DNA from: Macrostomum lignano
Taxonomy: Eukaryota
Assembly (NCBI GenBank): GCA_002269645.1
Contig: NIVC01001330.1
Location: 62,001 to 126,000 of the forward strand
DNA length: 64,000 nucleotides
Reading direction: 5' to 3'
Shown here in pieces: positions 7,101 to 29,702 of the stretch. Made by a program: the position numbers and the translations under genes. Within the stretch, counting starts at the first letter, position 1. Each line of letters begins with the position of its first letter. The notes under the pieces are model-generated. The model was not told the origin of the DNA and ran no database searches. It saw only the letters and a list, made by a program, of their open reading frames with translations.

Positions 7101-10100
7101 GATATGAGTAGGGTGAGATAGATATGAGTAGGGTGAGATAGATATGAGTAGTGTAACATAGATATAAGTAGAGTGAGATAGATATGAGTAGGGTGAGATA
7201 GATATCTTTAGGTTGAGATAGATATGAGTAGGTTGAGATAGATATGAGTAGGGTGAGATAGATATGAGTAGGGTGAGATAGATATCTTTAGGGTGAGATA
7301 GATATGAGTAGGGTAAATATTCGAGTATATTGAGATGGATAATAATGATAATTTGACGTGAACCACTCGCAAGTAAGTAATAAAGGTCAACAGAACTTAA
7401 TCCGGTCTTTCGGCCACCAGAAACAGGCATGCCATTCTGTCCATATTGATTGATGCAGAATGTTGATACTTTTATATTTCTTACCATCGATTGCCAAGAA
7501 AATCTTGCCCTATAATATAAAATCCTAAACCTCGTATAGTCAATTTTTATCTTTTAAATTCATATTTAGTATTAACCTGCATTTCTAGTTTCCATAGTAA
7601 CATATTTTATTACTTGTTTAACATTCCAGACGAAACTGTGCCACTCCTGCCACTTGGGAGTCTGCGAGTCGACAGACTGCTCAAACTCGACCATCTCAGC
7701 AGCTGAGCCGGCTGATGCTGCAGCCCCTTCGCTCCAGTCTGGCAGCTGCGACTGCCCCATAGCGGCTCCTCACTGCTGCAGGTGCTACCACTCGCGCCTC
7801 ATCAGCATCAAGAAGCTGCAGACACGCAAATTGAAGAAACCGCCTAAATCATTGAATTTGACCTATTTGTACATTGAGACTGTGATGAAGCACTTGCTTG
7901 GAGTTCGGTTTATACCGCCTATTGTGAGTGCCACTGACAACTGTTGCAGTCTTTGTAGCTTAGAGTGCAGTCTTTGTAGCTTAGAGTGCAGTCTTTGTAG
8001 CTTAGAGTGCAGTCTTTGTAGCTTAGAGTGCAGTCTTTGTAGCTTAGAGTGCAGTCTTTGTAGCTTAGAGTGCAGTCTTTGTAGCTTAGAGTGCAGTCAG
8101 TCACCACAGAACCGGTCTTTGTAGCTTAGAGTGCAGTCAGTCATCACAGAACCGGTCTTTGTAGCTTAGAGTGCAGTCAGTCATCACAGAACCGGTCTTT
8201 GTAGCTTAGAGTGCAGTCAGTCATCACAGAACCGGTCTTTGTAGCTTAGAGTGCAGTCAGTCATCACAGAACTGGTCTTTGTAGTTTAGAGTGCAGTCAG
8301 TCATCACAGAACCGGTCTTTGTAGCTTAGAGTGCAGTCAGTCATCACAGAACCGGTCTTTGTAGCTTAGAGTGCAGTCAGTCATCACAGAACCGGTCTTT
8401 GTAGCTTAGAGTGCAGTCAGTCATCACAGAACTGGTCTTTGTAGTTTAGAGTGCAGTCAGTCACCACAGAACCGGTCTTTGTAGCTTAGAGTGCAGTCAG
8501 TCATCACAGAACCGGTCTTTGTAGCTTAGAGTGCAGTCAGTCATCACAGAACCGGTCTTTGTAGCTTAGAGTGCAGTCAGTCATCACAGAACCGGTCTTT
8601 GTAGCTTAGAGTGCAGTCAGTCATCACAGAACCGGTCTTTGTAGCTTAGAGTGCAGTCAGTCATCACAGAACCGGTCTTTGTAGCTTAGAGTGCAGTCAG
8701 TCATCACAGAACCGGTCTTTGTAGCTTAGAGTGCAGTCAGTCATCACAGAACCGGTCTTTGTAGCTTAGAGTGCAGTCAGTCATCACAGAGCCGGTCTTT
8801 GTAGCTTAGAGTGCAGTCAGTCATCACAGAACCGGTCTTTGTAGCTTAGAGTGCAGTCAGTCATCACAGAGCCGGTCTTTGTAGCTTAGAGTGCAGTCAG
8901 TCATCACAGAACCGGTCTTTGTAGCTTAGAGTGCAGTCAGTCATCACAGAACCGGTCTTTGTAGCTTAGAGTGCAGTCAGTCATCACAGAACCGGTCTTT
9001 GTAGCTTAGAGTGCAGTCAGTCATCACAGAACCGGTCTTTGTAGCTTAGAGTGCAGTCAGTCATCACAGAACCGGTCTTTGTAGCTTAGAGTGCAGTCAG
9101 TCATCACAGAACCGGTCTTTGTAGCTTAGAGTGCAGTCAGTCATCACAGAACCGGTCTTTGTAGCTTAGAGTGCAGTCAGTCATCACAGAACCGGTCTTT
9201 GTAGTTTAGAGTGCAGTCAGTCATCACAGAACCGGTCTTTGTAGCTTAGAGTGCAGTCAGTCATCACAGAACCGGTCTTTGTAGCTTAGAGTGCAGTCAG
9301 TCATCACAGAACCGGTCTTTGTAGCTTAGAGTGCAGTCAGTCATCACAGAGCCGGTCTTTGTAGCTTAGAGTGCAGTCAGTCATCACAGAACCGGTCTTT
9401 GTAGTTTAGAGTGCAGTCAGTCATCACAGAACCGGTCTTTGTAGCTTAGAGTGCAGTCAGTCATCACAGAACCGGTCTTTGTAGCTTAGAGTGCAGTCAG
9501 TCATCACAGAACCGGTCTTTGTAGCTTAGAGTGCAGTCAGTCATCCCTATCACACAGCAGGCTAATCCCTAACACCAACAGGAAGTGCTGCACGCGGACA
9601 CTGAGTACTTGACCCAGATCAACACCCTGATGCGCCCCTTCCGTCCCCAAAACCGGCTGGTAAAGGACATCGATGTGCATTATCACGAGGCCATCATCAC
9701 ATCGGATGTGGCTTTCCTGCCTCTCGAACTTGACAAGTTCGTGCTCGAAGGTCGGCCGTCTCTGTGCATAGAACTCAAGGTGAGTTAGTGAATTTGTACT
9801 TTTCCAGTTTCCTTTAGGGGACGAAAGAAGTTAAAAAAATAAAATACGAAAATAGGAACTGTTACATTAGACTCATCAAAAATTGTTAATGACTTATTTA
9901 TTGTATTTATTCGAGCACTTGTTGACATCAAGAGTCCCACTCAGCATCTTAAGTCCTACTCAGCATCTTGAGTTCTACTCAGCATCTTGAGTCCTACTCA
10001 GCATCTTCAGTACTACTCAGCATCTTGAGTTCTACTCAGCATATTGAGTCCTACTCAGCATCTTCAGTCCTACTCAGCATCTTCAGTACTACTCAGCATC

Positions 10101-13100
10101 TTCAGTCCTAGTCAGCTATTGAGTCCTACTCGGCATCTTCAGTCCTACTCAGCATCTTTAGTCCTACTCAGCATCTTCAGTCCTACTCAGCATCTTCAGT
10201 CCTACTCAGCATCTTCAGTACTACTCAGCATCTTCAGTCCTACTCAGCATCTTCAGTACTACTCAGCATATTCAGTCCTACTCAGCATCTTTAGTCCTAC
10301 TCAGCATCTTCAGTCCTACTCAGCATCTTCAGTCCTACTCAGCATATTGAGTCCTACTCAGTCAGCTGTGAGGCGTCACAGCTCATCATGGATGCCAATC
10401 GAGCTGCCGTAGTCCGTAGCAGCGGAGCCGGCGAAGTCCGTCAGTCTCGCCAGCACCTCGTCTTTGCTCAGACCGCCGTCCAGGTTTGAATCGACCGTCT
10501 TCATCAGCCTGTCAGCTTCATCAGCCAGCTCAGCCGCCTCAGCTTCAGCCTCAGCCTCCTTGCTGTGAGCCGGTCCAGCCGAGTCCACATAATCCAGCAT
10601 CTTCTCCATCTCCTCCGCGTCCATATAGCCGTCCTTGTTCACATCCCAGACGTCCTTGAAATTCTTGGCGTCCTCGTCCGGCGCTTTGGGATCGGTTGCG
10701 GCCGGTGCTCCGGCCAGGAACTCGGCCAGAGACACTCGGCCATCGCCGTCCGAGTCCAGCCGCTCCATGGCCTCCAGCGCCAGCACCCGGCGCATTGCGG
10801 GCGAGGCTGCGGCAGCGCCCTCGGCGGCCCCTTCGGCCAGGGCGAACGCCGCAAATTCGCGCCGATTCAACCGGCCGTCGCCGTCCTCGTCGGCGGCTTC
10901 CCAGCGTCGGCGATCGCGGCCGAGTTCCACCGCCAGCCGATGCTGATGCTCCGCCTCGCTGCCGCCGCCGTCAGCTTCCGTTCTTGTTGACTTTGTCGGC
11001 TCCGGTGTCTCAGGAGGTGGCATCTGCGGCACGCCAACATTGATGCCGGCTTTGTCAATCCCAGTCTCCTTGCTAGCCTCATCAATAGCTCGTTTCACCT
11101 CGGCTTGGAACTCCGCCTGCTGCTGTTGCTTGGCTTTTGCCTTTTCCTCTTCCGAGCCGGAAGCGGTTCCAGTGTCCACGCTTGCAGCTCGGCGAGCAGC
11201 GTGACTGTCCCAGTCCAGGAAGCTGTCTGCTCCATCAGTGGTCAGGTTGTAGGCTTGCCAGGTCTCATCCAGCTCTCTAGCAGCCTGCTGTCTGTTGGCT
11301 TCTGCCAGCCATGCAATCAGCTCCTGACGGCTCACCTTCCCGTCTCGATTTGCGTCCAGTTTCTCGTCGAAAAGTTTGTCCAAATTGGACCGGGCCTTGG
11401 CTAGCTGCTCCGGAGTGAAATCCTCGGAGTCTGGAGAGTCTGACTCCGGTGCTGGCTGTCCTGCATCATCTGAGCTGTGTGCTCTGTCTGCTAGCAAAAC
11501 TGCTAGCAATAGCGCCAGGTTGAGAAGCTTCTGTAGCTGCATCATTCTTGCTCTGCTGGTCTGCGTGTGTGCGTGTGTGCAATGTTTTTGTCCAGTCAGT
11601 TTATTTATAGCTTTCCAAAAATTGGCCTACCTACTATTATTGTGCCAATGTGCTCGTTTGAGTCTCGAGGTTTCCTTAGCCCATCTCTCTCTCTTTATTG
11701 TTCCTGTGACCCCACCACCTCAGCCTTGTCTTGTCTCACGATGAGTCAGTCAGTGCAGCTGTCCACCTTTCGCACAATGTGGGGGGGGGGGCATAAAATT
11801 CAAGACAATTTATTTTTAGAAACTTATACTTGGATTATAATTCTTAATAGTAAAATCTGGAATTACTAATAAATGGAATATGAAATAAGTTGAAATATCT
11901 GTTTTTTATGATATCAACTTTTTACGTTAAATCATTAAACTGAAAATATGACATTTTTATAGAAGTAGATTTCTCTTTCGAACACACTTCGAACATTGGC
12001 TGTTTGAGCTTTCCTTGAGTGGACGCTAGTTTAGGAAAAGCCAAGGACTCCTAAAGCTCTCCCTGGACTGGACGCTAGTTTAGGAAAAGCCAAGGACTCC
12101 TAGAGCTCTCCCTGGATTGGACGCTAGTTTAGGAAAAGACAAGGACTCCTAGATCTCTCCCTGGATTGAACGCTAGTTTAGGAAAAGCCAAGGACTCCTA
12201 GAGCTCTCCCTGGACCGGACGCTAGTTTAGGAAAAGTCATGGATTTCTTAAGCTTTCTTTTGACTGGACTGTAGCCTGCGAAAAGCCGAGGACTTTGACT
12301 TTAATTCTAGAGTTCTCGTAGACTGAACGCTAATTTTGAAAATGTCATGGACTCCTAGAGCTCTTCCTGGACTGGATTAATTTTGGGAAAAGTCAAGGCC
12401 TTCCAAGAGCTCTACTGGATGTGGAAGTCTAGATTTTATGGCATTATATATGTCTCGTTTTCAATCCAGACAACTTCAAGGAAGTCCCTGGTCAGTTTCC
12501 GCTCGCTCGTAGTTCAATACACGAATTGCTTCTGAAAGATTTATAAATATTGTCAAAATTGCTTTCACAGGTGAAGCAAGGCTTCATACCCGTGTCAACT
12601 CTGGTGCAGGAGAAAGTCCGCAGAACCTGGTGTCGCTTCTGTCTGATGCAGTTTCATCTGGTTAGTTGAGGGTCTTGTTTTGTTGTAACCAGCACTGTGA
12701 AGAATATCTTGTGTAAATGAGTAATTTAACTTCGGTTTCTTCAAATGTTTCTATTCTAGAAAAAGGGTCGCCAATACGAGACCCGAAGTCAATACTGTCC
12801 ATGCGACCTGTTCTCAGGGTGAGTTTTCTTAATTTGCCATTTGAAATTCTTGATCTCATTTTATTTCAGGCATCGTAATATTAAGCACGTTTGTGTTATT
12901 GTTTTTTTCAGCATTAAAAGTCGCATGGTATCCGCTCTGATGTCGCTGATCCAGACTCCGCAAAACAATTTGCGAGTGTTCAAGGTAGGCAGGATTTGTG
13001 ACTTCTCTATCAGTATTACTGTTTGTTGGGAACAGCCATCGAAGGTGTGCAGCTGTATTTTTTGAAAACCCGCAGGCCTCTCCCAAAAATTGCTCAGTTC

Positions 13101-15567
13101 TAATGTTCAGCGTTTTCTAGAGACATTTAGCTCTAATCTGCCCTCTTTCCTATTTAATCGCAATGAAACTCTTTCCTAGAAACACCCAATCTCTATGTAC
13201 ACTCTTTCCTAGAAACACTCAATCTCCATGTACACTCTTTCCTAGAAACAGCCAACCTCAATGTACACTCTTTCCTAGAAACACCCAACCTCAATGTACA
13301 CTCTCCTAGAAACACTCAATCTCAATGTACACTCTCCTAGAAACACCCAATCTCAATGTACACTCTCCTAGAAACACCCAATCTCAATGTACACTCTTTC
13401 CTAGAAACACCCGACCCCAATAAACTCTCCTAGAAAAACAACCGCAGTGTACACTCTTTCCTAGAAAAACCCAACCTCAATGTACACTCTTTCCTATAAA
13501 CACCCAACCTCAATGTACACTCTTTCCTAGAAAAACTCCACCGAAATGCACACTTTTCTAAAAGCAATCAGCCCAAAACACACTCTTTCCTAGAAAACTT
13601 AATCACAATGTACACTGTTTCCTAGAAAAACCCAACCACAATTTGAAATTTCCTAGAAACACAGTCACAAAGTACGCATTCCTAAAAACAATGAACCCCA
13701 ATTCACTCTTCGTCAAAAACACCCGATCCCAATAAACTCTTTCCTAGAAATAAAGTTTTTTCCTAGAAATATCCAACGTCGACGTCGGATGTTCAGTCGA
13801 TCGACGCATGCCAAATTCTCAAAAGCGCACACCCCATTCCACTCACCCCAGAATGGCACCCCAGCCTACATAGTCGGCAACGAGTCTCCAGCCGATCTCG
13901 CAGCCTGTCTCCGCGAGTTCTTCGACATTCCTCCGTCATCTTCCTCGTCAACCAACGCCGAGGTGACAGACGAGCAGCTGGTTGCGGGATTCGTGGAGAC
14001 CCTCTACCAGGCACTCACCTATGAGTTCAAGTCGCTACCCGTCTCTGATGAGGCCCCTGTGTCAGCTTCTGCGGAATTTTCCTATCCAGCTGATTCGCAC
14101 TACTCGCAGCTGTGCTCAAGGCGGATGCAAGAGGAACAACAGCAACAGCAGCAGCAACCCACCCAGCTCAGCATCAACTGTGTGCTGGGCCGAATTCTGT
14201 CTGTTCAGCTGCTTGATCGGCTGGGTATTGATGGCACCCTGTCGCATTATAACCGACTGGTCAAGTTCCTGCAGGACAATGATACCGCTTGGTGAGCTGC
14301 TCTTGTGATTTATGAGAATCTGCACTGAGTGATTCATGAGAATCTATCATGAGTGATTCATGAGAATCTGCACTGAGTGATTCATGAGAATCTGCACTGA
14401 GTGATTCATGAGAATCTATCATGAGTGATTCATGAGAATCTGCACTGAGTGATTCATGAGAATCTGCACTGAGTGATTCATGAGAATCTGCACTGAGTGA
14501 TTCATGAGAATCTGCACTGAGTGATTCATGAGAATCTGCACTGAGTGATTCATGAGAATCTATCATGAGTGATTCATGAGAATCTGCACTGAGTGATTCA
14601 TGAGAATCTGCACTGAGTGATTCATGAGAATCTGCACTGAGTGATTCATGAGAATCTGTCATGAGTGATTCATGAGAATCTGCACTGAGTGATTCATGAG
14701 AATCTGCACTGAGTGATTCATGAGAATCTGCACTGAGTGATTCATGAGAATCTATCATGAGTGATTCATGAGAATCTGCACTGAGTGATTCATGAGAATC
14801 TGCACTGAGTGATTCATGAGAATCTGCACTGAGTGATTCATGAGAATCTGCACTGAGTGATTCATGAGAATCTGCACTGAGTGATTCATGAGAATCTATC
14901 ATGAGTGATTCATGAGAATCTGCACTGAGTGATTCATGAGAATCTGCACTGAGTGATTCATGAGAATCTATCATGAGTGATTCATGAGAATCTGTCATGA
15001 GTGATTCATGAGAATCTGCACTGAGTGATTCATGAGAATCTGCACTGAGTGATTCATGAGAATCTGTCATGAGTGATTCATGAGAATCTGCACTGAGTGA
15101 TTCATGAGAATCTGCACTGAGTGATTCATGAGAATCTGCACTGAGTGATTCATGAGAATCTATCATGAGTGATTCATGAGAATCGGTCATGAGTGATCCA
15201 TGAGAATCGGTCACACCCCCGCAGGGACTGCTCCAAGGGCAGCCTGAAGGACTTCGTGGAGTCGCTGCAGGCGCCGCTGTCGGTGATCCAGTCCGCGCAG
15301 CACTACGAGGCCTATCTGACATCCCTGGTTGCCAAGGACTGCTCAGTCATGCTCACCCTCGCCCCCAGCCGCCTGCCAGCTAGCGAGCTGCCAGACAGCG
15401 TTGCCCACGCCAAGGACCCCGTGTCCGGTCGAGGACTCCTAATGAACCTAGCCATAGTAGACTTGGATCCGAAACCGTTCGATAAAATTCGGTTAAACTA
15501 CAAAGAGGATCTCGAGGCGTTGCGCGGCTTTGATGCGACTGCGGCGAAGAACCACCGGCAGGACTGA
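4127..15567 (+). CDS. IPPK: Inositol-pentakisphosphate 2-kinase, 9 exons, 581 aa
   Basis: Exons 4127-4312, 5998-6060, 7630-7923, 9582-9779, 12571-12660, 12760-12818, 12912-12984, 13852-14291, 15225-15567. All introns are GT-AG with matching phases; total 1746 nt. Motifs: YRGEGN, VLRFRK, LCIELK/VKQGF, CRFCLMQ, YCPCDLFSG, PQNNLRVFKNG, AKDCSVM, IVDLDPKP. Confidence 0.93.
4405..5915. repeat. 20-bp minisatellite GTAGCTGCATCAGGGAGAGG (IPPK intron 1)
   Basis: About 75 copies. Confidence 0.95.
6615..7315. repeat. 20-bp minisatellite GAGATAGATATGAGTAGGGT (IPPK intron 2)
   Basis: About 35 copies. Confidence 0.95.
7944..9544. repeat. Compound 21-bp then 40-bp minisatellite (IPPK intron 3)
   Basis: TGCAGTCTTTGTAGCTTAGAG about 7 copies, then a 40-bp derivative about 36 copies. 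Confidence 0.95.
9934..10360. repeat. 19-bp minisatellite AGTCCTACTCAGCATCTTC
   Basis: About 22 copies, abutting the stop codon of the nested gene. Confidence 0.9.
10376..11545 (-). CDS. Reticulocalbin/calumenin (CREC family) ER-luminal EF-hand protein, intronless, nested in IPPK intron 4
   Basis: 389-aa ORF with an N-terminal hydrophobic signal peptide. EF-hand loops DANRDGKVSRQE, DEDGDGRLNRRE, DSDGDGRVSLAE, DVNKDGYMDAEE, DSNLDGGLSKDE plus a degenerate EF2. C-terminal FAGSAATDYG and HDEL-stop. Confidence 0.93.
   Translation of the reverse strand: MMQLQKLLNLALLLAVLLADRAHSSDDAGQPAPESDSPDSEDFTPEQLAKARSNLDKLFDEKLDANRDGKVSRQELIAWLAEANRQQAARELDETWQAYNLTTDGADSFLDWDSHAARRAASVDTGTASGSEEEKAKAKQQQQAEFQAEVKRAIDEASKETGIDKAGINVGVPQMPPPETPEPTKSTRTEADGGGSEAEHQHRLAVELGRDRRRWEAADEDGDGRLNRREFAAFALAEGAAEGAAAASPAMRRVLALEAMERLDSDGDGRVSLAEFLAGAPAATDPKAPDEDAKNFKDVWDVNKDGYMDAEEMEKMLDYVDSAGPAHSKEAEAEAEAAELADEADRLMKTVDSNLDGGLSKDEVLARLTDFAGSAATDYGSSIGIHDEL
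11601..11625 (-). promoter_or_regulatory. TATA box and CCAAT box of the nested EF-hand gene
   Basis: Minus strand TATAAATAA at 11601-11609, about 56 nt upstream of the ATG, with CCAAT at 11621-11625. Confidence 0.5.
12020..12400. repeat. 49-bp tandem repeat GGACGCTAGTTTAGGAAAAGCCAAGGACTCC...
   Basis: About 4 good copies plus degenerate copies. Confidence 0.85.
13170..13760. repeat. ~33-bp minisatellite ACTCTTTCCTAGAAACACCCAACCTCAATGTAC (IPPK intron 7)
   Basis: Degenerate tandem copies. Confidence 0.85.
14305..15212. repeat. 24-bp minisatellite GTGATTCATGAGAATCTGCACTGA (IPPK intron 8)
   Basis: About 38 copies, two variants. Confidence 0.95.
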
Positions 15568-16140: not shown

Positions 16141-17471
16141 TATAAGAGTTGCCCTAAATTTAAAATGATACAAAATATTTTTTAGTCCTTTTTACAAAGT
16201 ACAATACGTTTGTCTGTTTGCTTGTCATATATTAATAACATTATTATGCCAACAATTATAATATCCATTACATTTTAATGTCATGACACATTTAGAATGC
16301 TCATTACAGATGTTTAAAGATTCAAACCTGGACTATCATTTAACCATAAAAAATTTTTGTCAAATATTGTTGTTTTTTTCTAAATTTCATTACCCAGATC
16401 TTAGGTTATTCCGTATTGAACAGGTCTTTGTTCTAGCTTCAATTTTAAGTCGCAACTCACTACTTGCGCTCCTCATTTGGCTGGCAGTAGTGCATAAAAT
16501 TATTCTAATTTTGTTTTAATTTTTGTCTCTCCTTGCTTTTCAACCGCCCGCCTTCAGCCGTGTGCTAAAAAACAGAGTTGTTTTTTTCAGCAGTTTTTGT
16601 TCCCTATATATATTTTGCTAATAAATATTTCCCCAACTGTTTCAATGCTTTTCTTTGTCAGGAGGTTTTATCACTGAAAACAGATTTTGAGTTTTTTTTC
16701 AAAAATGCTTTGTAATTTATATCCGTTTTATTATTTTTTAAACTTCCACTCGCTTTGGAGTATTCTGCGTCCTCAGCTGACCATTTCCCAACTATGCTAC
16801 TTTTGTCCCCCCAGCTAATATCAGTAGCGTATTGAGGACATTGTATTTTTATCGCAAGGTTTAGTATTATTGTTATGCCTATTTCAGATTGGTTATCAAC
16901 TCTGTCAACCCCTGTTCGACTGAAGCCGCCCCCCTTTTCGGCGTGAATCGTGACGACCTCTGCGTATTAATTCAGTTTTTCCCAGGCTTCAGTTTTAGCG
17001 CCCGGCTTTTCTAACTCAGCTCACTGAAAATTGATCTTTTTAAGCTCGGCCTTCTAATATAAATAATAATAAATAAATGCGTATTGCGGAGTCAGATTGT
17101 GACAATTTGTTTAAAGTGAAACAAAAGAAATTAAATTCTGCTTATGCAGAAAGAGTCTTTCAAGTCTGAGTATATTGTTGTCTGTATTTGTCTGTTTTTG
17201 AGTCTGTAGCTACTACATGTTTAGGGTGGCTTCAATTTCTAACTGTTGTGGGGTGAACACTGCAAATCGATTAATGATAAATTCTAAACTGATTGACAAT
17301 AAGCAAAGCAGATACGAAAGAGAGCAGCTAGGTGAATGAATAAAATCATATTAAATATTTCACAGACTGTTTGCTGAAATAAATAAATATATGCGAAACA
17401 AATGTCTGCCAGCAAGTCTGAGAGAGAGCTGTTGCGGTGAAATGAGAAAACAGAAAAAATGATTTGCGAGT

Positions 17472-20400
17472 TCAGTAGCCGGTGAGCTCGGCAAAGGTCT
17501 GGTCCAGTTCTTCGCTGATGCCCTTGTAGCGTTCCTTCTCGGACAGGAGCTCGTCTGCGGGATGGGGGAATGCAGTTGGTTGAGGTTTCACCAGTTGGGA
17601 CTTTAGGGAAGTGCCAACTTAGCGTGTGGGACTTTGAGGGTGTGGGATTTTAGAATGTGGAATTTCTGGGAATTGGTTTTGATAGTGTGGGATGGGATTT
17701 CTAGGAGTTGAGATTTCAGGGTGTGGGATTTTTGCATGGGTGTGGGATTTGAAGCAGTGGGATTTGAAGGAGAGTGTGGGATTTGAAGCAGTGGGATTTG
17801 AAGGAGAGAGTGTGGGAGTTGAAGCAGTGGGATTTGAAGGAGAGAGTGTGGGAGTTGAAGCAGTGGGATTTGAGGGTGTGGGATTCGAAGGAGAGAGTGT
17901 GGGATTTGAATCAGTGAAAATAGAGGATGTGGAATTTGAGGGTGTGGGAATAGAGGATGTGGGATTTGAAGCAGTGGGATTTGAAGGAGAGTGTGGGATT
18001 TGAAGCAGTGGGATTTGAAGGAGAGAGTGTGGGAGTTGAAGCAGTGGGATTTGAAGGAGAGAGTGTGGGACTTGAAGCAGTGGGATTTGAGGGTGTGGGA
18101 TTCGAAGGAGAGAGTGTGGGATTTGAATCAGTGAAAATAGAGGATGTGGAATTTGAGGGTGTGGGAATAGAGGATGTGGGATTTGAAGCAGTGGGATTTG
18201 AGGGCTTGGGATTTGAAGCAGTGGGATTTGAAGCAGTGGGATTTGAAGCAGTGGGATTCGAAGGAGAGAGTGTGGGATTTGAATCAGTGGGAATTGAGGA
18301 TGTGGGATTTGAGGGTGTGGAATTTACAGCAGTGGGATTCGAGGGTGTGGGATTTGATGAAGAGAGTGTGGGATTTGAATCAGTGGGAATTGAGGATGTG
18401 GGATTTGAGGGTGTGGAATTTACAGCAGTGGGATTCGAGGGTGTGGGACTCCGAGATATCTACAGTACGAGGAACACAGTGAAATTGGTATTTAAAGTGT
18501 CAATGCTAAGATTACGCTCTTACTAAGATAGAATAACTAAACAAAATCAGGTTAATATTTTGCACGTAGCAATATTGTATAAATAAAAATTATTCACACT
18601 TAATAAAATTACCGGTAGCAATCAGTGCAATAAAGCAAACAAAGTTAAAGACTAGCGGCAGGTTAAATGCAGATTGAATTAACAATTTGAGAGTAAACTA
18701 ATTAAAACCAAATAATAATGTATCATAACTTTCCATAATAATTATGATATTTTTGAGTTAGCCAAGCCGTGTTTGAGGTGAACCACCTGCATCTACCTGT
18801 GCTGTAACGCCGCCTAAATGCTCTCAATCTCTTTGTAGTAGCTCTCCAGCTGGCCCTTCAGCTGCAGGAGGCTGTCCTTCTTCTGCAGCAGCTCAACTGT
18901 AGAGATGAGTTCACCGGATTGATGCAGGGTTGAGGTTGAGGCTGGCTTCGAAAACTTCAAATTTTATTTTCATCAACCCAAGAGACAAGGGCGCCAACCT
19001 AAGGGACAGGGGCGCCAACCTAAGGGACAGGGGCGCCAACCTAAGGGACAGGGGCGCCAACCTAAGAGACGGGCGCCAACCTAAGGGACAGGGGCGCCAA
19101 CCTAAGAGACGGGCGCCAAACTAAGGGACAGGGGCGCCAACCTAAGGGACAGGGGCGCCAACCTAAGGGACAGGGGCGCCAACCTAAGGGACAGGGGCGC
19201 CAACCTAAGATACAGGGGCGCCAACCTAAGGGACAGGGGCGCCAACCTAAGGGACAGGGGCGCCAACCTAAGGGACAGGGGCGCCAACCTAAGGGACAGG
19301 GACGCCAACCAATCAAAGAGACAGGGGCGCCAACCTAAGAGACAGGGGCGCCAACCTAAGGGACAGGGGCGCCAACCAACCTAAGAGACAGGGGCGCCAA
19401 CCTAAGAGACAGGGGCGCCAACCTAAGAGACAGGGGCGCCAACCTAAGGGACAGGGGCGCCAACCAATCAAAGAGACAGGGGCGCCAACCTAAGAGACAG
19501 GGGCGCCAACCTAAGGGACAGGGGCGCCAACCTAAGGGACAGGGGCGCCAACCTAAGGGACAGGGACGCCAACCAATCAAATAGACAGGGGCGCCAACCT
19601 AAGAGACAGGGGCGCCAACCTAAGAGACAGGGGCGCCGACCTACAGTGAATCCCGAATCCAACAGGGTCCTATCCACAACTTCTAATTTCCTCCGACATT
19701 TCTCAGTTTCTTTACCTTCGGCCTCATCAAGCTCCTTCTGCATTTGCAGGGCCTCTCGTTCTGCGGTGAGTGCCCTCTGCTCTGCCTGGGGTTGTCAGTT
19801 TGCATGCAGGTTATTGAGATGCGGGATAAAACAAACCATGCACAGTGACAACAAACAGTACTCAACAAAAAAAAATAGTGAGCATGAGGTAGCTGGAATT
19901 TTCAGGTGGTAGCTGGAATTGTCAGGTGGTAGCTGGAATTGTCAGGTGGTAGCTGGAATTGTCGGATGGTAGCTGGAATTGTCAGGTGGTAGCTGGAATT
20001 GTCAGGTGGTAGCTGGAATTGTCAGGTGGTAGCTGGAATTGTCAGGTGGTAGCTGGAATTGTCAGGTGGTAGCTGGAATTGTCAGGTGGTAGCTGGAATT
20101 GTCAGGTGGTAGCTGGAATTGTCAGGTGGTAGCTGGAATTGTCAGGTGGTAGCTGGAATTGTCAGGTGGTAGCTGGAATTGTCAGGTGGTAGCTGGAATT
20201 GTCAGGTGGTAGCTGGAATTGTCAGGTGGTAGCTGGAATTGTCAGGTGGTAGCTGGAATTGTCAGGTGGTAGCTGGAATTGTCAGGTGGTAGCTGGAATT
20301 GTCAGGTGGTAGCTGGAATTGTCAGGTGGTAGCTGGAATTGTCAGGTAGTAGCTGGAATCGTCAGGTGTAGCTGGAATCGTCTGGGGTAGCTGGAATCCA

Positions 20401-23400
20401 GTTCACTTGATTGCACGCACCAAAAGAAAGTACAAAACACCCAAAAACCCTCGCATGCAGCTGAGAAGTATTGTAAACTTTATGGCAGTTTAGCAAGCAA
20501 GCAAAATAATAATCTGGGACTGGGCAGGCACAGCAGCAGTTGAGCACAGTGCTCAGTCGTACCCTCCAGTCGGTCCACCTCGCTCTGCAGCTTGGCAACC
20601 TGCCTTTCGGCCTCTGTGGCTCGCTGCTCAGCCTGAGGTGTTTCGTGCGTTTTTTGTGAGATTGTTAAACACCAACTGCTAGCTAATGTTCGAGTATTTT
20701 AAAGTCTAACCTTTGTTTCTTGTTATTCATCGCCAGGCCAGATCAATCCAAGGTGTTTTAGAGGCATTCCGTTTTTATAGGAGTTATTGCAAAAATCATG
20801 GTTAGTCAAAAAATAATACAGGATTCGATGGTGGAAGATCCATGAAAAAAAGGAGAGGAAAAAATACTGACTGGATGGAGAAGTGAAAGGGAATAGAAGT
20901 CTGGATATTAGGTTTAGAGTAATTTACAGGGGGAAATTATAGGGGAATTTACAGGGGAGCAATTGGGATCAGGGGAATTTACAGGGGAGCAATTGGGATC
21001 AGGGGAATTTACAGGTGAAGAATTGGAATCAGGGGAATTTACAGGGGAGCAGTTGGGATCAGGGGAATTTACAGGTGAAGAATTGGGATCAGGGGAATTT
21101 ACAGGTGAAGAATTGGGATCTGGGAAATTTACAGGGGAGCAGTTGGGATCAGGGGAATTTACAGGGGAACAATTGGGATCAGGGGAATTTACAGGGGAGC
21201 AATTGGGATCAGGGGAATTTACAGGGGAGCAATTGGGATCAGGGGAATTTACAGGGGAGCAATTGGATCAGGGGAATTTACAGGGGAACAATTGGGATCA
21301 GGGGAATTTACAGGGGAGCAATTGGGATCAGGGGAATTTACAGTGGAAGAATTGGGATCAGGGGAGTTCAAAGGGAAGAATTGGAAACAGGGGAATTTAC
21401 AGTGGAAGAATTGGAATCAGGGGAATTCAAAAGAAAGAATTGGGATCAAAGGAATTTCTCTGATTTTAGATAATAAGAAACAGAGTAATTTACAGGGGGA
21501 GAATCAGGATCGAAGGTAATTTACAGGTAGGGGCGGAGAGAATTGGGATCAGGTGAATAAATTTGATGAGAATGGAAGATGTGGAGAATAAAGGAGACGG
21601 TTAGTAAATGTACGTAGTTAAGTTAAGTCTAGGCATAAAAATAAGTTGCCAAGCAGTAATCAGCAATGATGGAAACGCCTGTTCAACCGAGCTGCATGCG
21701 AGAGTCTGGGATAAGAAAATTTGAAGAAAAAAAGAGTACAAGCAGCTACCTCGTCTACTTTGAACTTCAGCTCCTGAATGTGCTTCTCCAGGTGAGTCTC
21801 CTTGCTTGAGGCCTGCATTTTGTTTCAGTTGGGCATGCAAAGAGGATGCTGTGTTTATGGTTTCATGGTGCATTCCATGCAGCTCAAAACAAAGACTGAT
21901 TCTAAAACACGCGCAAAAAAAACAAGCAACCATGGCATGCTGTAGAAATGAATCGGGGGGAAACGCCTGGCCTGGCAACTAAAATCAATATTTTTTGAAT
22001 AAAACAAGTTTTCTGAATGTCTTTCTCGCGACTCATGCAGGCGGGTCTCACGGTCTTGAGTCGTTCGGACAAGTTCCGGATGGTCTCCTCGTAGGACTCC
22101 TCACGCTGGGCGGCTTCCTGCTCAGAGATCTCCAAGGACTTCATGTTGCTGCCGACCACTCGGAGCTCCTCTTCGAGCTCAAGGATTTTGCTGCAGAATT
22201 TGGTTGGATTAGCGGCTTGGGATCAGAGTGGGTTTGGGGATCGGGATGGGGATCAGAGTGGGTTTGGGGATCTAGATTGGGATCAGAGTGGGTTTGGGGA
22301 TCTGGATTGGGATCAGAGTGGGTTTAAGGATCTAGATTGGGATCTGAGTGGGTTTGGGGATCGGGATTGGGATCAGAGTTGGTTTGGGGATCTGGATTGG
22401 GATCAGAGTGGGTTTGGGGGATTGGGATCAGAGTGGGTTTGAGGATCTGGATTGGGATCAGAGTGGGTTTGGGGATCGGGATTGGGATCAGAGTGGGTTT
22501 GGGGATCTGGATTGGGATCAGAGTGGGTTTGGGGATCGGGATGGGGATCAGAGTGGGTTTGGGGATCTAGATTGGGATCAGAGTGGGTTTGGGGATCTGG
22601 ATTGGGATCAGAGTGGGTTTAAGGATCTAGATTGGGATCTGAGTGGGTTTGGGGATCGGGATTGGGATCAGAGTTGGTTTGGGGATCTGGATTGGGATCA
22701 GAGTGGGTTTGGGGGGATTGGGATCAGAGTGGGTTTGAGGATCTGGATTGGGATCAGAGTGGGTTTGGGGATCGGGATTGGGATCAGAGTGGGTTTGGGG
22801 ATCTGGATTGGGATCAGAGTGGGTTTGGGGATCTGGATTGGGATCAGAGTGGGTTTGGGGATCTGGATTGGGATCAGAGTGGGTTTGGGGATCTGGATTG
22901 GGATCAGAGTGGGTTTGGGGATCGGGATTGGGATCAGAGTGGGTTTGGGGATCGGGATTGGGATCAGAGTTGGTTTGGGGATCGGGATTGGGATCAGAGT
23001 GGGTTTGGGGATCTGGATTGGGATCAGAGTGGGTTTGGGGATCTGGATTGGGATCAGAGTTGGTTTGGGGATCTAGATTGGGATCAGAGTGGGTTTGGGG
23101 ATCTAGATTGGGATCAGAGTGGGTTTGGGAATCTAGATTGGGATCAGAGTGGGTTTGGGAATCTAGATTGGGATCAGAGTTTGTTTGAGGATCTGGATTG
23201 GGATCAGAGTTTGTTTGAGGATCTGGATTGGGATCAGAGTGGGTTTGGGGATCTGGATTGGGTTTGAGGATCTGGAGTGGGTTTGAGGATCTGGAGTGGG
23301 TTTGAGGATCTGGATTGGGATCAGAGTGGGTTTGGGGATCTAGATTGGGATCAGAGTGGGTTTGGGGATCGGGATTGGGATCAGAGTGGGTTTGGGGATC

Positions 23401-26400
23401 GGGATTGGGATCAGAGTGGGTTTGAGGATCTGGATTGGGATCAGAGTGGGTTTGGGGATCTGGATTGGGATCAGAGTGGGTTTGGGGATCTGGATTGGGA
23501 TCAGAGTGGGTTTGAGGATCTGGATTGGGATCAGAGTGGGTTTGGGGATCTGGATTGGGATCAGAGTGGGTTTGGGGATCTGGATTGGGATCAGAGTGGG
23601 TTTGAGGATCTGGATTGGGATCAGAGTGGGTTTGGGGATCTAGATTGGGATCAGAGTGGGTTTGGGGATCGGGATTGGGATCAGAGTGGGTTTGGGGATC
23701 GGGATTGGGATCAGAGTGGGTTTGAGGATCTGGATTGGGATCAGAGTGGGTTTGGGGATCTGGATTGGGATCAGAGTGGGTTTGAGGATCTGGATTGGGA
23801 TCAGAGTGGGTTTGAGGATCTGGATTGGGATCAGAGTGGGTTTGGGGATCTGGATTGGGATCAGAGTGGGTTTGAGGATCTGGATTGGGATCAGAGTGGG
23901 TTTGAGGATCTGGATTGGGATCAGAGTGGGTTTGAGGATCTGGATTGGGATCAGAGTGGGTTTGGGGATCTAGATTGGGATCAGAGTGGGTTTGGGAATC
24001 TAGATTGGGATCAGAGTTTGTTTGAGGATCTGGATTGGGATCAGAGTGGGTTTGGGGATCTGGATTGGGTTTGAGGATCTGGAGTGGGTTTGAGGATCTG
24101 GAGTGGGTTTGAGGATCTGGAGTGGGTTTGAGGATCTGGATTGGGATCAGAGTGGGTTTGGGGATCGGGATTGGGATCAGAGTGGGTTTGAGGATCTGGA
24201 TTGGGATCAGAGTGGGTTTGGGGATCTGGATTGGGATCAGAGTGGGTTTGAGGATCTGGATTGGGATCAGAGTGGGTTTGGGGATCTGGATTGGGATCAG
24301 AGTGGGTTTGGGGATCTGGATTAGGGTTTAATGATCAGAATTTAGGATCAGAGTGGCGGTTTCAGATTAAAAGATACAGAAAGTGCGATAATAGAATTCC
24401 AAGTTGCATTTGAGCGGCGAAAACGAGGATTACACCAGGATACAAACATTAAAAACAATTTTTAGGCATTTAGGCGCGAACAATAATCAATAAGCAATAG
24501 TATCAACTCGAGTAACAAACTGACATGTCAACGCAACCATCAGCATGTTTGAATTGTATATGCTCATAAAATTCTTACTCAAAAAGCAACAGGTTATAAA
24601 CATTATTGCAGCATGCCATTGTCGCTTGTTTCCCTTGCTGAAAAGCAGAGATACCTTCTGCGTGTACTTTTGTTGTCCGTCAACGCTTTGAACCTCTGCC
24701 ACCCCCCCCCCTACACCAATAGCTGGTGAGCATGAGAATTTCAGACCTTCTCCTCGCTGTACTGCAACGACCTCAGATTGATGTTCACGATGGTCAGCTC
24801 GTCGCGGAGCTGACGCGCCTTGGCGGTGGCCACAGAGGCGCGTTCCTCGGCCTCGTCCACCTCTTTGTCCACCTCTGAGTAGCGCTTGTACACCTGCTCC
24901 AGTTGGACACGATGCAAGGTTAGTACATCACAGTCAAGCAGAGAATCAAGCATGCAACACTGAATCAGTGTTTAAAAATTTACAAACTGTGTGGTAAACA
25001 AGCGTGTTAGATATGATTAAGTTATTCGCAAAAAAAAGTTTGTTGCCAAAGATGAGGGCATGCGTTGGGCAGGGTAAACGCTTCAGATTCTGCCACTAGG
25101 AAGGACTCTCGGTCACAGATTGAACTCATTCCGAACATTGGATGGGCCTCTCGCTATCTAGATGTAGGCAATGAAGTTTGTTTGCTTCAGCCTGATGTCT
25201 TTGCAAATATTGCTTGCACCAAGGGGCGCCAGCACCAAGGGGCGCCAGCACCAAGGGGCGCCAGCACCAAGGGGCGCCAGCACCAAGGGGCGCCAGCACC
25301 AAGGGGCGCCAGCACCAAGGGGCGCCAGCACCAAGGGGCGCCAGCACCAAGGGGCGCCAGCACCAAGGGGCGCCAGCACCAAGGGGCGCCAGCACCAAGG
25401 GGCGCCAGCACCAAGGGGCGCCAGCACCAAGGGGCGCCAGCACCAAGGGGCGCCAGCACCAAGGGGCGCCAGCACCAAGGGGCGCCAGCACCAAGGGGCG
25501 CCAGCACCAAGGGGCGCCAGCACCAAGGGGCGCCAGCACCAAGGGGCGCCAGCACCAAGGGGCGCCAGCACCAAGGGGCGCCAGCACCAAGGGGCGCCAG
25601 CACCAAGGGGCGCCAGCACCAAGGGGCGCCAGCACCAAGGGGCGCCAGCACCAAGGGGCGCCAGCACCAAGGGGCGCCAGCACCAAGGGGCGCCAGTACC
25701 AAGGGGCGCCAGCACCAAGGGGCGCCAGCACCAACTAGAGGAACCCCCTGCCCCCTTGGCTACGCCCCTAAGTGCGTTCTAATTGTGTTTTTTCGGTTCT
25801 AGCCATAGACAATAACTTGTTGAAACTAATCAAAATCATGCCATATTATACCTGACTTTACAAGTACGTTAGCAGTTGTCACTAACTAAGGCGAGCGGCC
25901 CATCCAGTGTTTTTAAGTATCTGTGCTCTTAAGTCAGCTTCCTTCAAACGCAGCCTCATCACCTCTCGGCGCTCTCAAGACGCGACTCGGCCCGCTCAAG
26001 GTCGCCCTCGGTGATGGCCAGCTTCCTGGCCGCCTCATCGTACTTCCGGTCGGCGTCCTCGGCGATGTACTTGGCCTCTTTGAGCTGCTCCTCCAGCGTG
26101 TTGATTCGCTCATCATCAGCGATGGAGCGGTTCTCAAGCACCTTGCGACCTCTGCGGTGGATTTTGTTTTTAAAATTGGTCGAGTGCAACCTGAGCTAAA
26201 ACTGCGCGGTGTCGTGACGCTGAGCTCAGGTGCAATGAGTTTTTCATCTATCGCAGCCAATTTTAAAGCAGGCAAACCGTTATGGGTTAGAGAGGTAAAC
26301 CTTTGTCTAATTTTATAGCACTTATTTGTTATAATAGATTATTAATAAATAGCATGTCATTACGTTTAACTTAAGATTTTGTTATAAATCGCAAAATCGC

Positions 26401-29400
26401 GTTGCATTTTTATCGCAAAACTGCTGGTTTCGAATTGGAACTTTAATTTCCAATAAGACTTTAATAATTACGATTTGAATGCGATGAAAATGCATTTTCT
26501 GAACAAAAAATGTTTTCTTCTGTAATTTCTGCGTCGTAAAAAAAGCGGTTAGAGCTACTTACAGTAGGTAGCCGTATAGGCTACTGGCACGCCATACAAG
26601 TACATACAGTACTAAAATATTCAAGCAGCTTTTTAGTGCAAAAAACACAATACAGATCGGGGTTTCGGCGAGCTCCGGCCCAACAACCCCCTCTATTCGA
26701 TACTCTCGGGTCCTTTGAAACTTCACAATAGCAATCCGGCCCCGCTCAAGGTCTTCACGGTTCTCTTCTCTCTCCTCTCCCCCCTCTTGTCTCTTCTCTC
26801 CTTCTCTCAGCTCTCCTCCTCTCTCCTCTTCTCTCCTCTCTTCCCCTTCTCTCAGCTCCCCTCCTCTCTCCTCTTCCCCTCTCTTCTTCTCCTTCTTTCC
26901 TCTCTCCTGTGATCTCCTCTCATCTCTCTCCTCCCCCTTCTCCACTCTTCTCTCCTCTCCCCTCTTCTCCCCCCTTCTGTCCTTTCTCCTCTCATCTCCC
27001 CCTTCTCCACTCTTCTCCCCTCTCCCCCTCCTCTCCTGTCTTCCCCTATTCCTTCATCTCTCCTCTCTCTCCCTCCCTCTTATCCTCTCATCTCTCCTTC
27101 CATCTCTCATCCCATCTATTTTCTCATCTCCTCTTTCTCTCCTCTATTCCCCATGATTTATTCTAGCTGTCATCTGGCCCGCAGTCATGAGCAGGATTCT
27201 CTATCAGGCAATTCAGGTAAAATAAGTTTGCCGACCCCTGAAATACAGACTGTCATTGACCAGCCGTCACCATTAGGATCAATGGAAGTTAGCGCGCAAA
27301 CTATTTTTTATTGTATGGTTAAAGCGATCGATTAAAATGCATTGAATTGAGCTGAAGGAAATCAAACTGTGCCGGCTGCAAAGAGCGGCGGGAGCAAATT
27401 GCAGAAGGAGGGCGGGGCGTCACCTCTGCTTGTCGCTGCTCGTTCTCAGCAGCCAGCTCAGTGGCTTCATCAGTCTGTCGTTCCAGACTCTCCAATTGGC
27501 TGTCCTCGGCGGTCTGGCGGCTGTCCAGCACCTTCAGGGCGCTGCAGGATCGCCGCGTTTAGTTGGATTCCAAAAGCGAGTAGAGTTTTAGATTTTCATC
27601 TATGTGATTGAGTACTGAGCACTCAAAACGGCAAAAATACAAGCAAAGGAAAGTAAAGTAAATATGAATTATAAAAATTGAAAAAAAGAAAATCACGTGA
27701 AGCTTTTAAACGTAGAAACGCAATAATAAACAAAGTCATTTGTTTTATTTAATAATAGGAAAACTTTGAGTCTTCTTACCGCTCACTCTCGTCCGCAGCC
27801 TTGCTGGCCTCCTCAAGTTTCTGGGTGGCCTCGGTGAGTCGGGTCTCAGTCTGCTCGAGATCCTCCTCGATCAACCGGATGCGGCGAGTCAGAGCCTGCA
27901 CCTCGGCCTCGGCCTGTGAATGGTGAAAATTTCATAAAACTTTTATCTATTATAGACTGAAATTCACTTATCTAATTTTGACTTCGTTTTAATAAAATTT
28001 TAAAAATATTAATAATAATAGTAATAATAATAATGATATTAGTAATAATGTTTCGCGTTAAAATAGTAGTATAACAAGAGTGTTACAGACAAGCTAACAA
28101 ACAAATAAACAAATCTTAAAAATTAAGTATAGTTGGTCATTTTATTGCTTTATAAATAAATATAGTTGCGTTTATAATGTTCAATAATGATTTATAATAA
28201 ACCTATTGAAACAATGCTGTGATTTGCAAAAAATTAAATTTATTTTTTATTGATTTTGATTGATTTTTTATTGACAGATTTAGAAAAGAATTGCAAAATG
28301 CATTTATCATACAAATTATTCTAATTTTTTAATCTCTACTGATCGAAGCAGTATAGCCACTTTTAAAAGAAAAATGGAATATGGGCCTAGTATAAAATGC
28401 TGATATCATATATACATATAGAAAATATCAATGAATTTCAATGGAATTTAACAAATTAAATTGATTTATACATTTTCCTTCGAACTTCCATTCTTTATTC
28501 AGGCTTCAGAATTCTAGTAAGAAATTAATTTTTTTGAAATGTTATCAAACAGTTTAGTAAATAAAAAATGAAAAATTTTTTGTAATTAATAAAAAAACTG
28601 AAGAAAAAATTTAATTAATTATAAAAAATTAAAGAAATTGAATTATTCAACAGGTAGCCACCTACTTCTGCTTTTTTGTTCTCCTCTTCTGCGAGCTCAT
28701 TGTCTTTATTTTCCAGCTCTTCTGTAACCGCGTCTAATTCCTTACGCAGCGTCTGCATTTTCTGCTTTAGTATCGTCAAAACACTTTGAGATTGTCCGGA
28801 ATTGGCCATACTGGTCTAGTCAGAAATACTGATACAAAATGTTGTGTAGCGTAGTAAAGAAGTCAAACTACGGAAGTGAAGAATAAAAATAAGCGAAAAT
28901 TAATAGTCACGTGGCAAGTTAAATCTGCGCGAGTGTTATCAATTTAACAAATCCTTGACAACGAGCTTTCAAAATTGTGAAGATACTTAGATAATTATTA
29001 CTTAAGCTCTGTGCACTAATTAATTGCGATAAAAAATTCTAGGAAAAATTGCTTTAACGAAATTGTGTAGCAAGCAAAACACTCACATCATTAGCCCTCT
29101 TTTCAGTGGCCTCCAGGTTTGTGTTAGCACCTGCCAGAGACTCCTGTGCCGTATCAAGTTCCTGCTGCAGCTGTGAAAACTTTTTCTGCAGTTCACCCAT
29201 TTCTTCTTCCTTCTTTGTCATCTCATCTTCCTTTTCTTTAAGCTTCGTTTCTACCTGATCAGCTCTGGAATGTAAAAATGTGGACTTTGCATTAGAAATT
29301 AAATTAGATAATTATTGAACACTAAACGTTACGTGTAATTTTGACTTTCCATTTACAATTTTTTATTTTATCTGAATAATATAATATTAAGGGCTTAAAT

Positions 29401-29562
29401 TACGAGATTAAGACCAAGAACAAGATCAAGAACTTAATTGATAGGTCGTACATATATATACGTGACTAATTGCTTCATTGCATTCCAAAAGCATTATTAC
29501 CTGTCCATTGCATTCTCCTTATCCAGCTTCATAGCCAGCATTTTCTTCTTGATGGCGTCCAT
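17472..29562 (-). CDS. TPM: Tropomyosin, canonical muscle-type isoform (exon set B), 284 aa
   Basis: Exons 29501-29562, 29087-29264, 27780-27913, 25963-26151, 22052-22190, 20563-20632, 17472-17554. All GT-AG and phase-consistent. [18 protein letters not shown]...[16 protein letters not shown]...[12 protein letters not shown]. Confidence 0.95.
17590..18450. repeat. G-rich 15-bp-based degenerate repeat GCAGTGGGATTTGAA
   Basis: Lies between tropomyosin exons 9a and 9b. Confidence 0.85.
18814..29562 (-). CDS. TPM: Tropomyosin, divergent isoform (exon set A), 284 aa
   Basis: Shares exons 1-3, then uses 27424-27541 ([10 protein letters not shown]..), 24747-24893 ([16 protein letters not shown]), 21750-21812 (ASSKETHLE..), 19716-19785 (AEQRALTAE..) and 18814-18896 (VELLQKK..IESI*). 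Exon lengths 118/147/63/70/83 restore exactly 284 aa; all splice sites are GT-AG. Confidence 0.85.
18985..19640. repeat. 21-bp minisatellite GGGACAGGGGCGCCAACCTAA
   Basis: About 30 copies. Confidence 0.95.
19888..20390. repeat. 20-bp minisatellite GGTAGCTGGAATTGTCAGGT
   Basis: About 24 nearly identical copies. Confidence 0.95.
20925..21560. repeat. 30-bp minisatellite AATTGGGATCAGGGGAATTTACAGGGGAGC
   Basis: About 17 copies plus a degenerate tail. Confidence 0.9.
22215..24325. repeat. 30-bp minisatellite GATTGGGATCAGAGTGGGTTTGGGGATCTG
   Basis: About 70 copies. Confidence 0.95.
25218..25735. repeat. 16-bp minisatellite GCACCAAGGGGCGCCA
   Basis: About 32 nearly perfect copies. Confidence 0.95.
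26760..27150. repeat. CT-rich low-complexity tract
   Basis: Almost pure pyrimidine on the + strand. Confidence 0.85.
28666..28809 (-). CDS. TPM: Alternative first exon (1b) of tropomyosin, giving short 252-aa isoforms
   Basis: ATG at 28809, 48 codons [26 protein letters not shown]...KKAE, then a phase-0 GTAGGT donor. Lies between exon 2 and exon 3, the usual position of the internal-promoter exon 1b. Confidence 0.85.
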
Positions 29563-29702
29563 GTTTTGGTACCAGAGGATTATTCAGAAAACAATTCCAA
29601 AAAACTAGATGAGCGAAATCACAACTGAGAAAGAGCAGTAAAGCCCGGTTTCGAAAATCGGTGGAAAAAATTCGGTCAAACCCTTTCGTCTCGTAGTCGG
29701 CC

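Follow-up and report, generated by a model that had tools for sequence, protein, structure and literature searches.

Three exact intron losses and two frame-incompatible exon chains in a tropomyosin gene of the flatworm Macrostomum lignano

Background

Among the closest described systems is TpmII of Schistosoma mansoni (Smp_031770), in which a common exon is followed by six mutually exclusive tandem exon pairs (Silas et al. 2014, PMC4026961). Here we describe a complete tropomyosin gene of Macrostomum lignano, an early-branching free-living rhabditophoran flatworm. It lies on the minus strand at 17400-29600 of a 64,000-nucleotide (nt) stretch (NCBI GenBank assembly GCA_002269645.1, contig NIVC01001330.1, positions 62,001 to 126,000 of the forward strand). 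This whole stretch is called the window below, and positions are counted from its first base. The gene is like S. mansoni TpmII and the cestode and trematode tpm genes in its six tandem pairs, in the order of divergent (a) and canonical (b) copies, and in its starts for a high-molecular-weight (HMW) and a low-molecular-weight (LMW) form. However, each exon of the parasite genes stands alone, and paired exons there are alike in length and phase, whereas in Macrostomum three introns are gone and exons 4-7 contain non-homologous, staggered composites.

Vertebrate TPM1-4 genes (2a/2b, 6a/6b, 9a-d; RBFOX2/PTBP1) also make muscle and non-muscle isoforms from duplicated exons, but their duplications are independent, the clusters are fewer, composites are absent, and the coupling is regulatory rather than enforced by the reading frame. 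Introns inside alternatively spliced arrays are usually conserved. Fusions at alternative exons are described from arthropod Mhc genes: in Pediculus Mhc1 the stretch that other arthropods encode by an alternative exon cluster is joined to the next exon, and in Culex Mhc3 and Mhc4 the alternative exon 8 is fused to the next constitutive exon (Odronitz & Kollmar 2008, PMC2257972). In those genes the cluster collapsed to one variant and the choice was lost, while in Macrostomum both variants survive and are interlocked. The tropomyosin gene of the annelid Dimorphilus gyrociliatus is alike in that, in a compact genome, the introns between always co-spliced exons were lost (5 to 9 are one exon) and those flanking the duplicated exons 3 and 4 were kept; its fused exons are constitutive, however, and it has no staggered alternatives.

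Mutually exclusive duplicated tropomyosin exons (including the six parasite pairs), precise intron loss and Rbfox control of Tpm1 are already known, and no description of the Macrostomum arrangement was found. It differs from the textbook mutually exclusive cluster, as the alternatives of exons 4-7 are staggered composites and not equal-length homologues. We hold it to be probable that this gene is the M. lignano orthologue of parasite tpm, with a duplicated exon array in which three exact intron losses produced two interlocked chains, probably under shared regulation.

Structure of the gene

The gene was delineated by minus-strand translation, and its exons were set by splice sites, length and phase. 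An earlier reading from the sequence alone (the sequence-only reading) had listed the duplicated exons; all of them are present on the minus strand at the places given, and its outer limits agree to the base with the start of exon 4a (27541) and the end of exon 7a (21750). All exons below lie on the minus strand and are named in transcript order.

Exon 1, the HMW start (29501..29562), has its ATG at 29562, begins MDAIKKKM, encodes amino acids (aa) 1-20 plus 2 nt and ends at the donor GTAATA; it is followed by exon 2 (29087..29264; 178 nt; aa 21-80). The alternative first exon 1b (28666..28809; 144 nt; MANSGQSQ...NKKAE; donor GTAGGT) provides the LMW start and splices in frame to the constitutive exon 3 (27780..27913; 134 nt; aa 81-125). 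Then come exon 4a (27424..27541; 118 nt), a divergent copy of aa 126-164, and three composite exons. The first, 4b5b (25963..26151; 189 nt, that is 118+71), encodes canonical aa 126-188 without the ancestral intron at aa 164/165. The second, 5a6a (24747..24893; 147 nt, 71+76), which has a CTAAC branch-point-like site upstream, encodes divergent aa 165-213 without the ancestral intron at aa 188/189, and the third, 6b7b (22052..22190; 139 nt, 76+63), encodes canonical aa 189-234 without the one at aa 213/214. Exon 7a (21750..21812; 63 nt) carries divergent aa 214-234, and aa 235-257 are encoded twice, by the canonical exon 8b (20563..20632; 70 nt) and the divergent exon 8a (19716..19785; 70 nt). 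The terminal exon 9a (18814..18896) encodes 27 aa, the same length as 9a of Schistosoma and Echinococcus, and the terminal exon 9b (17472..17554) encodes a canonical C-terminus of the invertebrate muscle type. Acceptors are AG throughout, donors are GT on every internal exon, and the phases are compatible.

AG-[exact length]-GT open frames were scanned over the entire minus strand of the window and scored against an independent human TPM1 reference, and the exons listed here were the sole candidates to rise above background. Exons 4a, 5a6a and 8a score 55, 83 and 49, while the medians are about -11 to -27 and the top unrelated candidates reach about 15-37, depending on the exon class; exon 7a is weaker (30 vs 25 for the best unrelated candidate). 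The scan found no separate 5b, 5a, 6a, 6b or 7b exon.

Splicing the exons in silico gives four intact open reading frames (ORFs), of 284 aa for HMW-A and HMW-B and of 252 aa for LMW-A and LMW-B. The matches to the Pfam family Tropomyosin (PF00261; cutoff 38.6) are all collinear and reach 303 bits for isoform B, 193 bits for isoform A and 87 bits for the A-specific part by itself. In the TPM1 heptad register, 83% of the a/d positions are hydrophobic in both A and B, compared with at most 49% in other registers. Exons 8 (70/70 nt) and 9 have alternatives of equal length and phase. Those of exons 4-7 are unequal, at 118, 189, 147, 139 and 63 nt, and their boundaries are staggered.

Frame interlock of the two exon sets

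Including or skipping each of the five middle exons gives 32 patterns. Of these, 8 are in frame, and only two of the eight, 4a+5a6a+7a and 4b5b+6b7b, give 284 aa; the remaining six lose or gain residues in multiples of seven. None of the eight in-frame patterns mixes the a-set and the b-set across exons 4-6. As the boundaries of the a and b exons no longer coincide, transcripts that mix the sets in exons 4-6 are out of frame, and joining 4a with 6b7b, or 4b5b with 5a6a, introduces a premature stop before the last junction. Such stray chimeras would presumably be cleared by nonsense-mediated decay (NMD). Exons 4-7 allow 16 readable full-length combinations in the unfused parasite genes and 2 in Macrostomum, in which exons 8 and 9 are still freely combinable. 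The exon anatomy of Macrostomum, the derived state of its fusions and the frame interlock are thus shown, while the deletion mechanism, the clearance by NMD, the regulation by Rbfox and stem, and the transcripts themselves are inferred. The frame analysis predicts that a mature messenger RNA (mRNA) would carry one member of each cluster.

Ancestral exon order and loss of the introns

For comparison, we ran the same length, phase and splice-site scan on TpmII of Schistosoma margrebowiei, the Echinococcus granulosus gene and a TpmI-type gene of Paragonimus. In all three parasitic (neodermatan) flatworm genes, exons 4-8 are each present twice, as separate exons of ancestral length, in the order 4a, 4b, 5b, 5a, 6a, 6b, 7b, 7a, 8b, 8a, and 9a then 9b were located in two of the three (S. 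margrebowiei and E. granulosus). This is exactly the ancestral order, from 4a to 9b, that had been deduced from the Macrostomum sequence, with 9a and 9b confirmed in those two genes.

The exons of the ostracod Notodromas monacha are 134, 118, 71, 76, 63 and 70 nt long with phases as in flatworms, the annelid D. gyrociliatus has the exon 3 and exon 4 boundaries in common, and the intron positions of vertebrate TPM genes are identical. The introns at aa 164/165, 188/189 and 213/214 are older than flatworms, because the same positions are found in the ostracod (in the annelid, for exons 3-4), so Macrostomum has lost them. The fusion junctions, for example between RKYDE and AARKL and between ISEQE and AAQRE, are collinear with the unfused orthologues, and at all three junctions zero residues were gained or lost. 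The claim that the codon-exact fusions 4b+5b, 5a+6a and 6b+7b join neighbours both in the genome and in one mRNA is borne out: they are derived, precise intron losses.

The outgroup comparison that the sequence-only reading had proposed, namely whether the fused state is ancestral, gave unfused exons in the parasite genes and shared intron positions in the ostracod, and so turned out in favour of that reading. An ancestral fusion in flatworms, with introns regained in the parasitic lineages, has in its favour that Macrostomorpha branch early within Rhabditophora, so that the polarity needs an outgroup. It is contradicted by the parasite introns, which stand in both a and b copies at the exact positions and phases of the ostracod, annelid (exons 3-4) and vertebrate TPM introns; regain would demand many parallel insertions at ancestral sites, and we regard it as extremely improbable.

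Three tropomyosin loci outside the flatworms show further features. In Notodromas (6131-9979 of its locus) exons 4, 5 and 7 are duplicated while 6 and 8 are single, that is, another set of duplications than in flatworms with the same intron positions. The Dimorphilus gene (7417-8813 of its locus) contains exons 3 and 4 twice each and then one terminal exon for aa 165-284, and its intron loss is confined to places without intervening alternative exons. Haliotis cracherodii has two tandem intronless tropomyosin-like genes of 284 aa about 7 kb apart (10001-10855 and 17973-18827 of its locus), which look like retrocopies duplicated later; being intronless, they are uninformative on intron positions.

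Origin and use of the divergent exons

In a neighbour-joining tree of concatenated exons 4-8, the a-sets fall in one group with 96% bootstrap, and the topology within this group mirrors the b-tree. Per-exon identity matrices and trees were dropped as uninformative, each a-exon being nearer to b copies than to other a-exons. Stronger arguments for a common origin than the tree are the pair positions, the duplication of the whole block and the shape of exon 9a. The position of the divergent copy is the same in Macrostomum and the parasites in all six pairs (chance about 1/32 to 1/64), the whole exon 4-9 block is duplicated in both, and the 9a exons are all 27 aa long and end in E-x-x-[S/N]-I.

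The competing account is that the Macrostomum duplications are independent of those in the parasites and that its composites arose by staggered segmental duplications of a gene from which introns were already gone. Tropomyosin exons have indeed been duplicated independently many times in bilaterians (PMC3342872), the pairs of exons 4, 5 and 7 in the ostracod and of 3 and 4 in the annelid being examples, and identity between a-exons from different flatworms is just 25-29%. Besides the common features just listed and the well-supported a-clade, however, no simple duplication series gives exons of 118, 189, 147, 139 and 63 nt with correct phases, and an independent origin of the a-exons is unlikely; the full version with staggered segmental duplications is, in our estimate, very improbable. 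A related doubt is whether the A set (4a, 5a6a, 7a, 8a, 9a) is a decaying relic that no longer enters functional mRNA. This would agree with the lack of any A-type transcript or protein of Macrostomum in the searched libraries apart from a gene-prediction fragment that covers 8a-9a (metaclust P0001). On the other side, the five A exons are open, have canonical splice sites, exact ancestral lengths and an exon-like GC content of 0.51-0.61; their coiled-coil register is as good as that of isoform B, the A-specific part matches Pfam Tropomyosin, and regulatory motifs cluster beside them. We regard decay as very improbable, and by these features of the exons the A path would be in use in Macrostomum.

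In searches with the canonical isoform, flatworm tropomyosins were retrieved first. The partial UniProt entry A0A1I8FBT4 of M. lignano corresponds residue for residue to the exons of the window, including an intron that is read as protein. As a gene model this entry (P0047) is faulty, since the end of 4b5b is frameshifted and the intron sequence ANPTKFCS is read into 6b7b. The metaclust model P0001 is faulty as well and joins intron, 8b, 8a and 9a. When the existing protein models were compared with 17472-26151 of the window, none was found to contain the A chain.

The existing models also differ at the 5' side. Many models from flatworms, annelids and others (P0002, P0004-P0010, P0217, P0222, P0246) have a non-coiled insertion of about 200 aa before exon 3, which ends in the conserved motif ...LNSGTLIK.AIIG.ELQN... 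and suggests that a third alternative 5' exon is conserved widely. This long alternative N-terminal exon of the schistosome and annelid models was not found in the window by a motif search.

Candidate regulation of the two chains

UGCAUG is the Rbfox site, and binding upstream represses an exon while binding downstream activates it. Seven UGCAUG motifs lie on the transcript (minus) strand of the gene, with first bases at 24956, 22039, 21881, 21839, 20459, 19842 and 19808 (span 19803..24956). All seven are within 120 nt upstream of a-exons (5a6a once, 7a and 8a twice each) or downstream of b-exons (6b7b and 8b), and no UGCAUG was found in the equal-sized mirror-image windows or elsewhere between exon 3 and exon 9b. 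Pooled over four flatworm genes, 21 motifs are in the predicted windows vs 5 in the mirror windows, and TGCATG ranks 1 of 4096 hexamers for this asymmetry between a-upstream and b-downstream windows. The reverse complement has no asymmetry (7 vs 5), which places the signal at the RNA level. RBFOX2 regulates exon 6a of rat Tpm1, and long reads show muscle exons to be linked within single molecules (PMC8419188). In Macrostomum a shared regulator would probably pick the A or the B path through the polarity of these sites; an Rbfox-type protein would repress the a-exons and activate the b-exons, so that muscle and neurons would receive the canonical b chain.

The second candidate element is an RNA stem. 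Its 5' arm (24601..24638, minus strand) begins about 109 nt after the 5a6a donor, and its 3' arm (21913..21950, minus strand) is about 100 nt upstream of the 7a acceptor. The two arms form a 38-nt inverted repeat that is unique in the window, with a fold of -45 kcal/mol (z = -11.7). Long loops inflated the RNAduplex energies of 180-nt windows. Pairs were therefore scored by local inverted alignment with shuffled controls, and by this measure the stem ranks first of 36 intron-window pairs. Pairing of the arms would loop out exon 6b7b together with a 2.1-kb minisatellite and may favour the 5a6a-to-7a join. Other inverted repeats in the window are short and AT-rich, or enclose only a minisatellite. 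One of them, of 21 nt with 90% complementarity (25134-25154 / 25891-25911), is within the 4b5b-5a6a intron and encloses a 16-nt minisatellite; it could represent the ends of an inserted element or an intron-shortening stem.

Mechanism of intron loss and order of events

Putting these results together, exons 4 to 9 were probably already tandem-duplicated in the flatworm ancestor, each with a slow canonical b copy and a divergent a copy. In the Macrostomum lineage the introns between 4b and 5b, 5a and 6a, and 6b and 7b were then deleted exactly, leaving the interleaved staggered sets 4a / 5a6a / 7a and 4b5b / 6b7b. More tentatively, and with rather more doubt than confidence, we propose a frame-interlocked two-state switch: four clusters welded into two incompatible chains whose purity would be kept by frame and NMD, with the choice of chain made by an Rbfox-type protein and the UGCAUG sites overlapping the looping stem.

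The sequence-only reading had attributed the fusions to mRNA-templated recombination, as the only introns that this process could delete without removing an intervening exon. The pattern does not single out that route. With purifying selection acting afterwards, every exact mode of deletion ends in the same surviving fusions, as a join of two pair members is either out of frame (71+71, 118+118) or repeats a segment. Nor is 8a-9a the one eligible intron that was kept, as had been claimed: introns 1-2, 1b-3 and 3-4a were kept too, and 7a-8b, also retained, counts as eligible provided that such mRNAs exist. The Macrostomum losses are like mRNA-templated intron loss in their codon-exact removal, in the persistence of orthologous introns and in the retroelement-rich genome; they are unlike it in having no 3' bias or adjacent run, in lying inside an alternative array and in requiring templates from two isoforms.

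Two routes of loss and two orders of events have to be weighed here. Precise intron loss is reportedly attributed to reverse-transcribed mRNA, in the Fink model and in later surveys, and the classic signature of loss through complementary DNA (cDNA) is a 3' bias with adjacent losses. In Macrostomum the lost introns are internal and separated by retained ones, and the 3' introns 8a-9a and 9a-9b are kept, unlike that signature. These features speak for genomic deletion, for example by microhomology-mediated end joining at the AG and GT of the splice sites, after which selection would have kept only usable exons; this route is expected to give the identical set of fusions. The cDNA model moreover calls for three or more brief conversion events, each separate, with two kinds of mRNA as templates, because any longer tract would have removed the exons in between. 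What speaks against genomic deletion is the codon-exact removal in three cases, a hallmark usually attributed to cDNA-mediated loss, with no footprint (residual intron bases or lost exon bases) at any junction; and reverse transcriptase is plentiful, with long terminal repeat (LTR) retrotransposons making up 21% of the M. lignano genome (PMC5730564). We regard genomic deletion followed by selection as a real but somewhat disfavoured possibility, and between a cDNA route and a deletion in the genome as such the balance is roughly even.

That coordinated A-A/B-B splicing existed before the fusions and was hard-wired by intron loss, as the sequence-only reading had it, goes beyond the evidence, and its support is of an indirect kind only. 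A Fasciola gene model (P0258) contains the all-a chain 4a-5a-6a-7a-8a-9a, and a Schistosoma all-a query matches only this model and one Trichobilharzia fragment. In S. mansoni the cloned TpmII.3 is extensively exon-substituted, whereas TpmII.4 and TpmII.7 have the canonical form (PMC4026961), duplicated tropomyosin exon copies are viewed in a review as becoming assigned to one of two isoforms (PMC3342872), and the UGCAUG map is common to unfused species. It may instead be that the coupling is a consequence of the fusions, the clusters 4-7 having been chosen more or less independently until the fusions made a two-state switch. Any mRNA with a 4b-5b, 5a-6a or 6b-7b junction could template or tolerate such a loss, each of which needs just the pairwise junction and not global coordination. 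The fusions themselves help to define the a/b labels of exons 4-7, and 4b-5a-6b hybrids occur in schistosome annotations (P0008 from S. mansoni, and P0010; P0216 reaches only 4b-5a), so that unfused exons are not strictly coupled. In view of the all-a chain in Fasciola, the substitution throughout TpmII.3, the shared motif map and the review's view of exon assignment, we consider this order of events possible but rather unlikely.

Several observations weigh against our reading of the locus. Echinococcus alone shows no UGCAUG asymmetry (4 vs 4), and the UGCAUG test was devised after the motif had been noticed, so that it needs independent confirmation. No stem comparable to that of Macrostomum was found in the Schistosoma, Echinococcus and Paragonimus genes (three loci), and the antisense strand folds nearly as well (-39.5 vs -45.1 kcal/mol), a difference too small to be usable as evidence for a function of the stem at the RNA level. 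The retained 3' introns misfit the classic 3'-biased cDNA-mediated loss. By raw identity the a-sets are closer to the slowly evolving b copies (32-40%) than to each other, so that the a-clade could be a product of long-branch attraction; a single lineage of a-exons is seen in the concatenated tree and is not obvious by raw identity. Finally, libraries of 5.8 billion and 1.84 billion proteins yielded neither a Macrostomum transcript nor a close A-type protein: the word-indexed search for the A isoform returned only the gene-prediction fragment P0001, and the exhaustive HMMER search gave at most 45% identity over long alignments.

Other features of the window

Of the nine introns counted from 4a to 9b, seven each contain a distinct tandem repeat of their own (17740-18481, 18974-19643, 19888-20397, 20941-21457, 22217-24322, 25216-25734 and 26772-27035), and none is present in the short introns 3-4a and 6b7b-7a. 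The repeat units are about 15-36, 21, 20, 30, 30 and 16 nt, and a CT-rich one of 91 nt, and the largest array, of 2.1 kb, is between 5a6a and 6b7b. These intronic repeats fit the 15% tandem-repeat content reported for M. lignano.

Downstream of the tropomyosin gene, an uninterrupted ORF of 389 aa on the minus strand (10376-11545) contains several EF-hand domains (Pfam EF-hand_1/7/6/5) and looks like a single-exon gene for a calcium-binding protein. Another minus-strand ORF, of 353 aa (14261-15322), has a Pfam match to the C-terminal trimerisation repeat of phage T4 gp5 (56 bits); it is in a repetitive region, and the match is probably repeat-driven.

Implications

The locus corrects an annotation, as the UniProt model reads through an intron and is without the A isoform. 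It also bears on the question of how distant alternative-splicing choices in one gene are coordinated, which is usually approached by long reads and knock-downs of regulators. Between the six separable pairs of the parasites and the Macrostomum array, in which chimeras of exons 4-6 are unreadable, there is a natural comparison. It allows tests of whether coupling came before the fusions, of what hybrid isoforms cost, and of whether introns in alternative arrays can be lost while the alternatives are kept. RNA interference and transgenesis are available in M. lignano, so that the predictions for the Rbfox sites and the stem are testable. If the proposed switch is true, the gene would be a natural case in which intron loss turned a regulatory coupling of distant splice choices into a structural one.

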